Positions 38,405-44,272 of a DNA stretch of 44,554 nucleotides are shown piece after piece. Location of the stretch: assembly GCA_002269645.1 (NCBI GenBank), contig NIVC01004481.1, positions 1 through 44,554 of the forward strand. Direction: 5' to 3'. Position numbers and translations under genes: made by a program. Below the pieces are notes generated by a model, which was given only the letters and a program-made list of their open reading frames with translations, had not been told where the DNA came from and ran no database searches. Each line of letters begins with the position of its first letter. Positions within the stretch are counted from its first letter, which is position 1. The DNA comes from Macrostomum lignano (taxonomy: Eukaryota).

Positions 38405-41400
38405 ATGGCTTCTGAGCGACAGACCGAGGAAGGCCTTCAGGCTGATGAGAAGAAGCAAGACAAACAACAAGAAAATTCACCGCCCCAGAAAGTCACTCAG
38501 TTCGTGTCCGACTTCTGCGGCTACACCTCCGCTCACGGACTCGGCCGGTTCTCTTCCCAGTCGGGCACCTTGGGTCGCGTCATCTGGCTTACCTTCCTGC
38601 TGGGCACCTACGGCGGCTTCACGTACCACCTGTACAGCCTGTTCGACCGGTTCATGGGCGCACCGGTGCTCACGTCCATTGCGACCTCGCTTCCGTTCGA
38701 GTTTCCGGATGTGTACCTGTGCCCGCACAGAGCGATCACCATGAGCACCATGGTGGAGAGGATCTCGCCTACGTATTTAACTAACTCCCAAGTTGACTGC
38801 TGCTGGTCGAACAGCTTCGCCTTTGACATGGAGAAAAAAGTAAGTGGCGCCCACCCGTCTGAGTTGCGACTGACTCCGGAGATTCTGGCGCTGTTTCACG
38901 TGATTTCCGGGACGGAGCAATCGCTGATGAAAGAATACCGACAGGCTGTTAACCGTGAGCTCTGCGACTACTAAGTGCTTTTTCTTGGAGAACCCTAGAA
39001 TGCTCAGAACTTAGAAGCATTGCTTAGTTCTTGTCAGAGCATCAAAGTTACTAAGACTTTTTATCACGAGCTTGTGACAGTAAACATTTAGCTAGGCTAT
39101 TTAAAGGTTGAAGCTACAGTAAAATGTTCTGCATTTAAATTTGCTCTGCACACGCCCAACCTAAGCTGATTGGTCTTATCAATTCAGGAGTCGTACCCGA
39201 ACGCCGTTGCAGACAGCAATTCCGAGTGTCGCATCACCCAAGCTGGTGAGGAGTACAATGGCAGCCTCTCAGTTGTGCCCATCTACCAACGCATTGGAGA
39301 AGAAAAAGTCGTATCGAACGTCAGCTTCTTCAGCACCTTGCCGTACCTGAGCTACCAGAACTGCACCGAGTGGAACCGAGCTGCGCGACTGTTGCTAAAC
39401 ACCACGCTGTCCCATCAAGCCGGCCAGATTCTGGCGTTAAACCTGTCAGAGAGTGACAACAAGTGCAGAGCTCCCCCGGGTGTCCCTCTCACTCAGTGGT
39501 GGAATGGGTCGTATCGTAAGTTAAACCGCAATTCAAACTTTAACAGGAATTTGGGGATATTTATACATTTCTGGCTTGAGCAAGAAGCTGATCGTGAAAC
39601 GTGAAACGTGAGTAGCGAGTCTGCTCAAATTCGGTTCCTAGAGCCAGTTTTATGGCACAGAATGTGCCTCGCAGGTCACCTTGCGTGAGTGGGTGGTTTG
39701 GTAAGAGTCGGTGGTGAATCTTTAGCCAGTTCAATATATTCCATTTTACGGAAATTCTTCCCTGGTATCCGGTATCTCACTAGTGCATTTTGGGTTGAAA
39801 ACCGGCTCTAAAAAGGGGTCGTTGCACCGATTCTAAAGAATCGACTTTAGAACCATGAGACAAATTCGGTCTGCCCCCACGAGGGCCGATCCAAAGACAC
39901 AGAGTCTGAGCACTGAGCATTGAGAATGCTCAGAAAGAGAAGGCACTATTCCTCTGAAAAATGTATTGCCTGCTTGATTGAACTTAAAAATATGATCGGC
40001 ATTTGTTCTCTAGGTCCGCTGCAAATCGAGCTTGGCTGCTATTTCAAAGCGGTAGCTTCGGCACCCTATAAATGTGCCATAAATGACTTTGCTGGCATGA
40101 CGAGCCAGATGTGCAGAGAATGCTGCTACGGAAAGGGTTATGTCTACATGGGCCTGACCAGCCCAGATTGCTACTGCATCACAAAGAGCGACGGTGAAAA
40201 CATGAAGATGTTTGGCAGCGCCTCTAACTGTGACGCCACGTGCAACGGAGAAAACCGAGTCTGCGGCAGCAACGATCTCCTGTCGCTGAGTCTCTTGCAG
40301 ATCGATTTCGACGGTAGGTACCTTAATTATTTTTTTAATACACTATAACAAGTTATCTAGTAAATAATAATAACTGCCAGAAACTTTTGCTTTCCATATT
40401 CTAATTCTCGGCTGCAATCAAATCTATCGAGTACGAGTGACCCTCAATTTTCCACTCGGGGCTTTCAAGGGTGGACACAGAGACTCTGTGGCTTCGCCTA
40501 GTCAAAGTAGTCTATGGCCCAAACCAAAGTGGCTAGAAGGCGCGATCAGTTTTCCAACTGAGGCAAAAAATTTTCCACACCCTGTAAGCAGAAGACTCCG
40601 TGGAAAAGGCAGCGGAATTTTGTCTATGGCCAAGCTATACTGAGACCATTCAGTGCCGAAGCTTTTCTGAGAGGCTTTGATCAGGTCTAAACTTAAGTGC
40701 GAGCTTGTGGTCTCGTAAGACCACAAACAGCCCTTTTCTTTTGACGACTTGATTGACTGACGCGTTGTCTGCTCTCTGACGGCGGAGATTTAACCTCCAC
40801 AAGGCCAAAATACTAAAATTAGCGATGAAACGCGGCAGCTCATCATTCATTCTCACGAACGGGGAGACACAATACACTGTAGGTCTTGCCAAGATATCCT
40901 GGTTTAAATACGAGTGGAAAACTGATTGCACCTTCTAGCCATTTTGGCTTGGGCCATAGACTACTTTGACTAGGCGAAGCCACAGAGTCTCTGTGTCCAC
41001 CAAGCCCAGAGTGGAAAATTGACTGCAAAAAGCGATACTTGTTTGCAGGCTAGGAATATCAGCTTCAAAAATCAAAGTTTGTCAACTCTCAGTCCCTCCA
41101 GCACCTTGCTAAACCCGACTGAGATCAGGCCCGGCAAGCAATTGATCATTAAGATAAAATCGCGCCTAATTAATCCACTTTTGATAATAGTAAGCACATA
41201 ATTCCAGACTCGAGGCCGATGCGCATTCCGCTTGGCAACAGCCTCACAAATTCGATGCAGGGTCCTTACTGCTTCTACTTTGACAGCACCCAGCTCAGCG
41301 CCTACTACTGCGGCGTTCCGTTCTGTGGTAACGCAGTTTTATTTTTATCTACATGCATATTCGAGCTACATCTAGTATGGTCATTCAGGAAACTTGAAAT

Positions 41401-44272: not shown

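Follow-up and report, generated by a model that had tools for sequence, protein, structure and literature searches.

A nested kringle-WSC module inserted in the finger of a DEG/ENaC channel subfamily of Macrostomum lignano

Channels of the DEG/ENaC superfamily respond to very different stimuli, including protons, peptides, proteases and force, and much of this diversity resides in the finger. A gene located in a stretch of 44,554 nucleotides of the Macrostomum lignano contig NIVC01004481.1 (assembly GCA_002269645.1, forward strand, positions 1 to 44,554; hereafter the window), a eukaryotic DNA with introns, raises the question of whether this region can host a complete extracellular binding module and, if so, what such a module may do for the channel. 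An initial annotation, made from the letters of the window, had proposed that kringle and WSC modules are grafted into the finger of a DEG/ENaC channel encoded there. The analysis described here confirms that observation and supports its interpretation in part. The gene, which occupies positions 38405-44272 of the + strand, represents the 5' half to two-thirds of a M. lignano DEG/ENaC (ASC-family) channel subunit gene. The kringle/WSC design of the channel is genuine; it is conserved in a single lineage and has not been studied before. Taken as a whole, the data are probably best explained by a subfamily architecture with a putative tether or receptor module, to which the window copy belongs as a deep paralog of its own.

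The identity of the host protein was established with Pfam ASC (PF00858): the match reaches 67-81 bits, where 23.6 bits are required, and E is 1.6e-18 when the insert is included and 1.9e-21 once it is removed, the insert-free protein covering positions 1-222 of the 455 of the profile. The HG motif YTSAHGLGRF, the first transmembrane segment (TM1, VIWLTFLLGTYGGFTYHLYSLF) and the FPDVYLC strand are present in the translation and conserved in the paralogs, while the conserved CxFxGxxCxxxDF block (GTDLLERQFGRNLDVSLTECSFGGQKCTQDDF) is found downstream of the insert, with about 370 cysteine-rich residues between the finger helix alpha1 and this block. The FPDVYLC strand and the GTDLLERQFGRNLDVSLTECSFGGQKCTQDDF block had been named as the borders of the insert, and both were recovered in the translation. 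Eight exons, all with GT-AG borders, join in one frame from the ATG at 38405; since they do so and Pfam ASC matches, the coordinates and flanking motifs of the initial annotation can be considered right, the ATG and the exon 8 donor after 44272 being exact. This donor falls exactly where the paralogs have their AFK|AVIVP intron. The junction between exons 1 and 2, in turn, was moved to 38954/39213 after alignment with the paralogs. A second canonical pair, with a donor after 38839 (phase 0) and an acceptor before 39188, also keeps the frame, and the two pairs could be alternatives; nevertheless, the longer exon 1 is most likely the correct one because its 38 extra amino acids (finger helix) align with every M. 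lignano paralog. The window stops 282 nt into the intron after exon 8, and the thumb, the palm and the second transmembrane segment (TM2) lie beyond it.

The insert is encoded by six exons (2-7, positions 39213-43698) and comprises 372 amino acids with 22 cysteines. Exon 3 alone reaches 28.3 bits against Pfam WSC (PF01822), marginally above the cut-off of 27.8 (E 2e-6), and the WSC domains of the paralogs score 39-43 bits against the same model. The remaining exons encode two six-cysteine modules. The kringle is a compact triple-loop fold of about 80 amino acids with disulfides 1-6, 2-4 and 3-5. When Pfam Kringle (PF00051, cut-off 34.3 bits) was used, kringle 2 scored 18.2 bits, kringle 1 gave no match and the paralogs reached about 18-19 bits. 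Family profiles were then compared by hhalign with a profile of 91 bona fide kringles, after excision of the WSC domain from kringle 1, and each kringle was aligned with a probability of 98.3% (P ~1e-13) over all 81 kringle columns, including the six cysteines; the controls (ten column-shuffled profiles, one reversed profile and a WSC profile) gave 0.4% or less. The two window sequences alone produced 97.2% and 98.4% against the kringle profile, and 47 bits against a kringle hidden Markov model (HMM). When profiles of the modules were run across the PDB, nearly every protein retrieved was a kringle protein (prothrombin, tPA, uPA, ROR1, HGF, apo(a) and plasminogen), and of the 41 matches outside the family that were obtained with the module HMM among 1.84 billion representatives, 34 were Pfam kringle proteins and five were WSC proteins. 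The C-terminal part of kringle 1 aligned with plasminogen kringle 5 (GDVGGPWCYT..CDVPQC), and the motifs Y-x-G...G-x-x-C-x-x-W, N-[YF]-C-R, G-P-[WY]-C and C-x-[IV]-P-x-C aligned with the kringle profile. Both modules are thus predicted to be divergent kringles despite their sub-threshold Pfam scores, and the composition first proposed, two six-cysteine kringles plus a WSC domain, holds. As a separate observation, five kringle proteins from the module profile search (within P0012-P0052) also contain a rhodopsin-type seven-transmembrane domain, that is, they are kringle-GPCR (G-protein-coupled receptor) fusions.

The order of these modules is not the linear kringle-WSC-kringle series that had been described. 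Exon 2 stops just after NKCRAPPG, which contains the third cysteine of kringle 1, and the rest of that kringle is found in exon 4 (GPYCFY…C.VPFC); since kringle 1 splits around the WSC exon, the WSC domain lies within its Cys3-Cys4 loop and not between two complete kringles. The insert therefore consists of kringle 1 holding a complete WSC domain in the Cys3-Cys4 loop, a short linker, and kringle 2 with long loop extensions. The insertions are considerable: about 25 amino acids plus the WSC domain and linkers in kringle 1, whereas kringle 2 spans 124 amino acids. Both the nesting and the collinearity are kept in P0001, P0006, P0007, P0053, P0009 and P0061.

Kringles of the plasminogen type bind lysine in a pocket formed by an acidic pair, placed after N-Y-C-R-N-P in the Cys3-Cys4 loop, and by the aromatic residues W62/W72. 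In the alignment the acidic pair is missing from both kringles of the insert: kringle 1 reads RAPPGVPL and continues into the WSC domain, which replaces that loop, and kringle 2 reads RSVSHVQ. The earlier general remark that kringles bind proteins or lysine thus does not simply extend to lysine binding by these two, which are very divergent and devoid of the acidic residues of the lysine site. The abundance of N-glycosylation sequons noticed earlier, on the other hand, was borne out: the insert contains nine, compared with 4.2 +/- 1.8 in shuffles of the same residues (P ~0.014).

The paralog P0009 was used as a proxy of the window protein for structure prediction by AlphaFold. The predicted local distance difference test (pLDDT) score was 57 for the module and 44 for the full-length protein; within the module model, the WSC part ranged between 66 and 84, the kringle parts were mostly below 50 and the N-terminal half of kringle 1 was below 35. 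Foldseek retrieved yeast Wsc1 (7pz2) as the best structural match of the module model (E 9e-5, TM 0.6 on the target), corresponding to the WSC part, and Kremen1 as the second-best group, and gave no kringle match with this low-confidence model. Wsc1 is a fungal single-pass sensor that contains neither a channel nor a kringle. Kremen1/2 (Kringle-WSC-CUB; PDB 5fws, 5fwt) also combine a kringle with a WSC domain; however, their domains are arranged in tandem with a CUB domain on a single-pass receptor, whereas the channel contains a nested WSC domain and a second kringle in a host with two transmembrane segments, and Pfam detected no CUB domain in the window protein or in the paralogs. The insert is therefore not of the Kremen type, although the initial annotation had pointed to kringle plus WSC as the combination of Kremen receptors.

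The distribution of the architecture was explored using M. lignano paralogs as proxies for the window protein in the database-wide search of representatives. A word-indexed search of 5.8 billion proteins gave three M. lignano proteins at E <1e-60 (Pfam WSC + ASC, 28-33% identity), the sole other match being a weak, ASC-only protein from a coral. An exhaustive HMM search of 1.84 billion cluster representatives yielded eight clusters with the module, all of them from M. lignano, which answers the concern that the design might already be widespread. In public data the architecture thus appears to be confined to M. lignano, where it occurs in several deep paralog lineages. UniProt and NCBI already list subfamily members, as yet uncharacterised, under the name "WSC domain-containing protein" (ASC+WSC), and one database fragment is labelled "Kringle domain-containing". 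In the literature found, no DEG/ENaC protein with a kringle or a WSC domain and no flatworm finger insertion of this kind is described, in agreement with the earlier remark that no channel of this architecture had been characterised.

Full-length paralogs (PAA82974, 1052 amino acids; PAA86857, 1033; PAA47210, 1091) hold the HG motif, TM1, palm, thumb and a TM2 with a FaNaC-like GGxLGLWxG[IV]S filter. The TM2 of the paralogs reads GGALGLWSGISVLT or similar, the filter being GGALGLWSGIS or GGILGLWCGVS in P0009, P0061 and P0015, and GIF in P0053. Across the subfamily the insert amounts to about 370-400 disulfide-rich residues between helix alpha1 and the alpha2/alpha3-CxFxGxxC block. The PAA gene models derive from RNA-seq-guided transcript assembly (PMC5730564), therefore module and channel exons share one mRNA in the paralogs. 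Over 573 shared columns the window protein is 37-43% identical to five paralogs, which are 34-51% identical among themselves, and a near-identical match is absent from both the transcript-based and the predicted M. lignano proteomes. With this degree of identity and no near-identical annotated protein, the window copy is an additional, unannotated deep paralog, and the M. lignano gene set gains one member.

To our knowledge no FaNaC, ASIC, ENaC or PPK has a kringle[WSC]kringle insert (the brackets denote nesting). Among solved structures, FaNaC (PDB 7yvb, 8on7) is the best match for the core of the paralogs; it shares with them and with the wider DEG/ENaC/ASIC group the ASC fold, the HG motif, the FPxVxxC strand, the CxFxGxxC/DF block and the GGxLGLWxGIS TM2. 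P0009 devoid of its insert matches the structures of FaNaC, ASIC5 and ENaC; relative to FaNaC, the insert is placed between residues 155 and 197, in the finger, where FaNaC binds its ligand. So far, only the M. lignano subfamily is known to have the module of about 370-400 amino acids between the finger helices. Other lineage-specific elaborations of the ectodomain that regulate gating are described in this superfamily, such as the finger (GRIP) insert of ENaC alpha/gamma and the regulatory and Cys-rich domains of MEC-4; the former operates by protease release and the latter belong to a matrix-linked touch complex, and neither is a kringle/WSC module or homologous to the insert.

The gene structure informs on the origin of the module. 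Exons 2, 3, 4 and 5 are each flanked by phase 1 introns, the intron between exons 6 and 7 is in phase 2 and that after exon 7 is in phase 1, so that exons 6 and 7 jointly form one further 1-1 unit. Most module introns had been noted to be in phase 1, and the symmetric 1-1 units are those expected from the exon shuffling proposed at that time. The pattern fits an assembly by exon shuffling, including the placement of a WSC exon into an intron within a kringle. In the P0009 gene (locus L001) the corresponding exons measure 303/300/123/195 nt with the same phases, compared with 303/300/120/165 in the window copy; the translation of L001 is inexact with respect to P0009 after amino acid 485 and the first six exons were compared. 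The homologous exon 1 was the sole blastn match between the window and L001. Since exon sizes and phases agree in a paralog that is ~38% identical, the insertion of exons that gave rise to the module preceded the divergence of the paralogs, and the module has persisted ever since. The locus thus provides a clean example of exon shuffling, with a domain within a domain within a third domain and the intron phases still visible. In L001, the exon for amino acids ~468-517 of P0009 (start of the middle part of kringle 2) occurs twice, at 13010-13099 and 19782-19883; the copies, 6.7 kb apart, are 62% and 97% identical to P0009 and could represent an alternative exon, a duplication or an assembly artefact.

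The window copy does not have an intact open reading frame (ORF). Relative to all paralogs, a single nucleotide is deleted in exon 8, at ~44116, and the unrepaired frame runs into FVLA-TGA; addition of one base gives FVLA-MNNVQLANSELSITFFTD and a gap-free alignment with the paralogs. A mini-intron of 27 nt was considered as a rescue and discarded, as it would leave the frame broken and the P0009 gene lacks an intron there. The lesion is either an error of the assembly consensus or a very recent disablement, and a probable one-base error or recent pseudogene is hereby flagged in the gene set. The most serious competing explanation, with odds clearly short of even, is that the frameshift is real and that the window contains a paralog already dead or in decay, silent as a gene, with only its annotated relatives being functional channels. 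Besides the in-frame TGA, this explanation draws on the absence of a near-identical protein from either proteome, although the neighbouring fibrinogen-related gene does have an annotated entry that is 100% identical, and on a near-intact long terminal repeat (LTR) retrotransposon that ends 1.3 kb upstream of the channel ATG. Opposed to it, this is the sole defect in about 2 kb of coding sequence, the 22 cysteines of the module, every splice site and all conserved channel motifs being intact, and a single uncalled base (GC[C]ATG or GCA[A]TG) could account for the lesion. In the M. lignano genome paper, assemblies are compared by the number of transcripts with intact ORFs (PMC5730564).

As regards function, the subfamily members would assemble as trimers that conduct Na+, and their three kringle[WSC]kringle modules would stand at the top and outer edge of the ectodomain, each attached at the finger, the site of peptide binding in FaNaC and of the inhibitory tract released by proteases in ENaC. 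The disulfide between Cys1 and Cys6 joins the ends of a kringle, a geometry that would be suited to insertion into a loop. The ligand of the module may be a glycan or protein outside the cell, be it in the matrix, in the glycocalyx or in a secreted product. Because the classical lysine pocket of the kringles is not conserved, contact would be made by the WSC domain or by novel surfaces, and the module would pass binding or force to the finger, gating or modulating the channel. We infer that the insert is most likely an integral tether or receptor through which such a glycan or protein modulates gating. WSC domains sense carbohydrates or surfaces; this property and the loss of the lysine pocket favour such a role, as do two precedents. 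The WSC domain of yeast Wsc1, located at the cell surface, is described as a mechanosensor (PMC9024836), and N-glycans of ENaC are reported to act as matrix tethers (PMC7958617). In addition, MEC-4 is described in matrix complexes (10.1101/2022.02.11.479800), and flatworm membrane-bound multi-kringle proteins have been proposed to hold secreted adhesive (PMC9229212), therefore kringles have extracellular binding roles in this phylum. The transfer of force to DEG/ENaC channels through extracellular tethers is still argued, and a finger that carried a matrix- or glycan-binding module would offer a genetically tractable test of the tether idea in M. lignano, for which transgenesis has been developed (PMC5730564).

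Several facts speak against this explanation as a whole. The curated Pfam Kringle model stays under its cut-off (18 vs 34 bits) and the AlphaFold models are poor, so that the kringle fold, like the way in which the halves of kringle 1 pack together, remains a prediction; the acidic pair of the classical lysine site is absent from both kringles; TM2 of the window copy falls outside the window; and this copy, having a frameshift and no near-identical annotated protein, may not be expressed. Furthermore, the EGAS ("EGF plus ASC") channels of Caenorhabditis elegans, functionally uncharacterised DEG/ENaC members that likewise carry an extra extracellular Cys-rich module, produced no currents in oocytes (PMC10424705), which cautions that such module-bearing proteins may not be simple homomeric channels. 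The EGAS proteins, likened here by their description, differ in having an EGF module and in belonging to another lineage.

A stronger version of the same idea, in which a receptor-type ectodomain has been fused into the gating finger so that binding or pulling on a glycan or protein directly opens or tunes the channel, is regarded as rather unlikely. If true, it would represent a new gating modality for the DEG/ENaC superfamily and a rare three-level, domain-in-domain-in-domain product of exon shuffling.

Instead of tethering the channel to the matrix as part of a mechanosensor, the module might be the receptor of a soluble peptide or protein, which would make the protein an ionotropic ligand-gated channel. 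Among solved structures, the peptide-gated FaNaCs come nearest to the core, and their TM2 is nearly identical; the ligand site of FaNaC is placed in the finger (10.1101/2023.02.01.526556, PMC11993918), and the kringle, WSC and CUB domains of Kremen1 are described as a rigid unit in the complex with the protein ligand Dickkopf (PMC5014086). However, it is TM2 and the palm that account for most of the similarity to FaNaC, the insert interrupts precisely the pocket of the finger, and the proposal comes without a known ligand candidate. It is given about one chance in five.

Slightly less probable still is a module that has no part in gating and serves folding, assembly, trafficking, surface anchoring or a protease-dependent regulation like that of ENaC. 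Kringles are common in protease systems, and kringle 2 has long loops that vary from paralog to paralog. The finger of ENaC is reported to have a regulatory insert that is removed by proteases (PMC9540061). On the other side, all cysteines and several motifs are strictly conserved across paralogs of 34-51% identity, which points to a specific folded binding unit.

Lastly, it is highly improbable that the kringle/WSC exons are a separate gene nested in a channel intron and the architecture a chimera of gene models, the outcome that the initial annotation had named as its refutation: in spite of large introns (0.2-1 kb) and a window locus that is itself without cDNA, the seven junctions are frame-compatible, the module region lacks its own start codon and its own signal peptide, the collinear order and exon phases are kept in paralogs ~35-38% identical to each other, and the RNA-seq-based models PAA82974, PAA86857 and PAA47210 hold both parts.

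Table 1. Exons of the channel gene and other features of the window.
Feature	Position	Strand	Content
Exon 1	38405..38954	+	ATG, short cytosolic N-terminus, HG motif (YTSAHGLGRF), TM1 (VIWLTFLLGTYGGFTYHLYSLF); ends in phase 1
Exon 1, later part		+	Post-TM1 strand FPDVYLC, then finger helix alpha1 (TPEILALFHVISGTEQSLMKEYRQAV)
Exon 2	39213..39515	+	303 nt, phase 1-1; N-terminal part of kringle 1: Cys1 (SECRI), Cys2 (NCTEW), Cys3 (NKCRAPPG)
Exon 3	40014..40313	+	300 nt, phase 1-1; WSC domain, 10 Cys, within the Cys3-Cys4 loop of kringle 1
Exon 4	41208..41327	+	120 nt, phase 1-1; linker and C-terminal part of kringle 1: Cys4 (GPYCFY), Cys5 (YYCGV), Cys6 (PFC)
Exon 5	42334..42498	+	165 nt, phase 1-1; kringle 2 Cys1 (HDC), YTGFRNVTVTGKPCVNW motif, Cys2
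Exon 6	43369..43489	+	121 nt, phase 1 to 2; middle of kringle 2, NYCR (Cys3)
Exon 7	43592..43698	+	107 nt, phase 2 to 1; end of kringle 2: Cys4 (PGCYVY), Cys5, Cys6 (TCSIPMC)
Exon 8	43912..44272	+	Channel fold resumes, finger remainder and beta-ball: ITGAIRHSIGTDLLERQF, ECSFGGQKCTQDDF, GLCHRF followed by SITFFTDATDS, SELSITFFTDATDS
1-nt deletion vs all paralogs	44112..44120, at about 44115-44117	+	CTGGC^ATGAAC, exon 8
Intron 3 element	40470-41001		87-nt inverted repeats
Intron 4 repeat	41646-42242		(AACT), ~150 copies
Upstream repeat	37599-37902		(ACCAGAC)x43
Upstream tandem array	37306-37527		38 nt x 5.8, perfect
BEL/Pao-type LTR retrotransposon	29198-37113	+	Terminal direct repeats and long ORFs
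Fibrinogen-related (FReD) gene	27957-29029	+	Signal-peptide exon, two Fibrinogen_C exons
ORF with Pfam Globin match	15385-16260	-	E 4.5e-7
GC-rich stretch	5834-10230	+	Up to 69% GC; long Gln/Pro/His-rich ORFs
Minisatellites	1479-3240, 18593-19945, 21843-22739		Yield spurious long ORFs

The channel gene is accompanied by repetitive DNA (Table 1). The short element in intron 3, whose inverted repeats are 95% complementary and lie 358 nt apart, looks like a non-autonomous DNA transposon, the tetranucleotide repeat makes up half of intron 4, and two tandem arrays are found just upstream of the gene. The BEL/Pao-type element has terminal direct repeats of 132 nt that are 95% identical and 7784 nt apart, and its long ORFs match Peptidase_A17, RVT_1, rve and DUF5641, the closest database protein being 35% identical. 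The fibrinogen-related gene is 100% identical, over 182/182 residues, to a M. lignano UniProt protein, which assigns the window to this species, and ~25 M. lignano paralogs are 50-80% identical to it. Further upstream, the very GC-rich stretch, for which no Pfam match was obtained in the one ORF tested, may be a gene for a low-complexity nuclear protein, and the ORF with the globin match runs into a repeat encoded by a minisatellite (…LRVCGDRRPLLRLNGDRRPL…).

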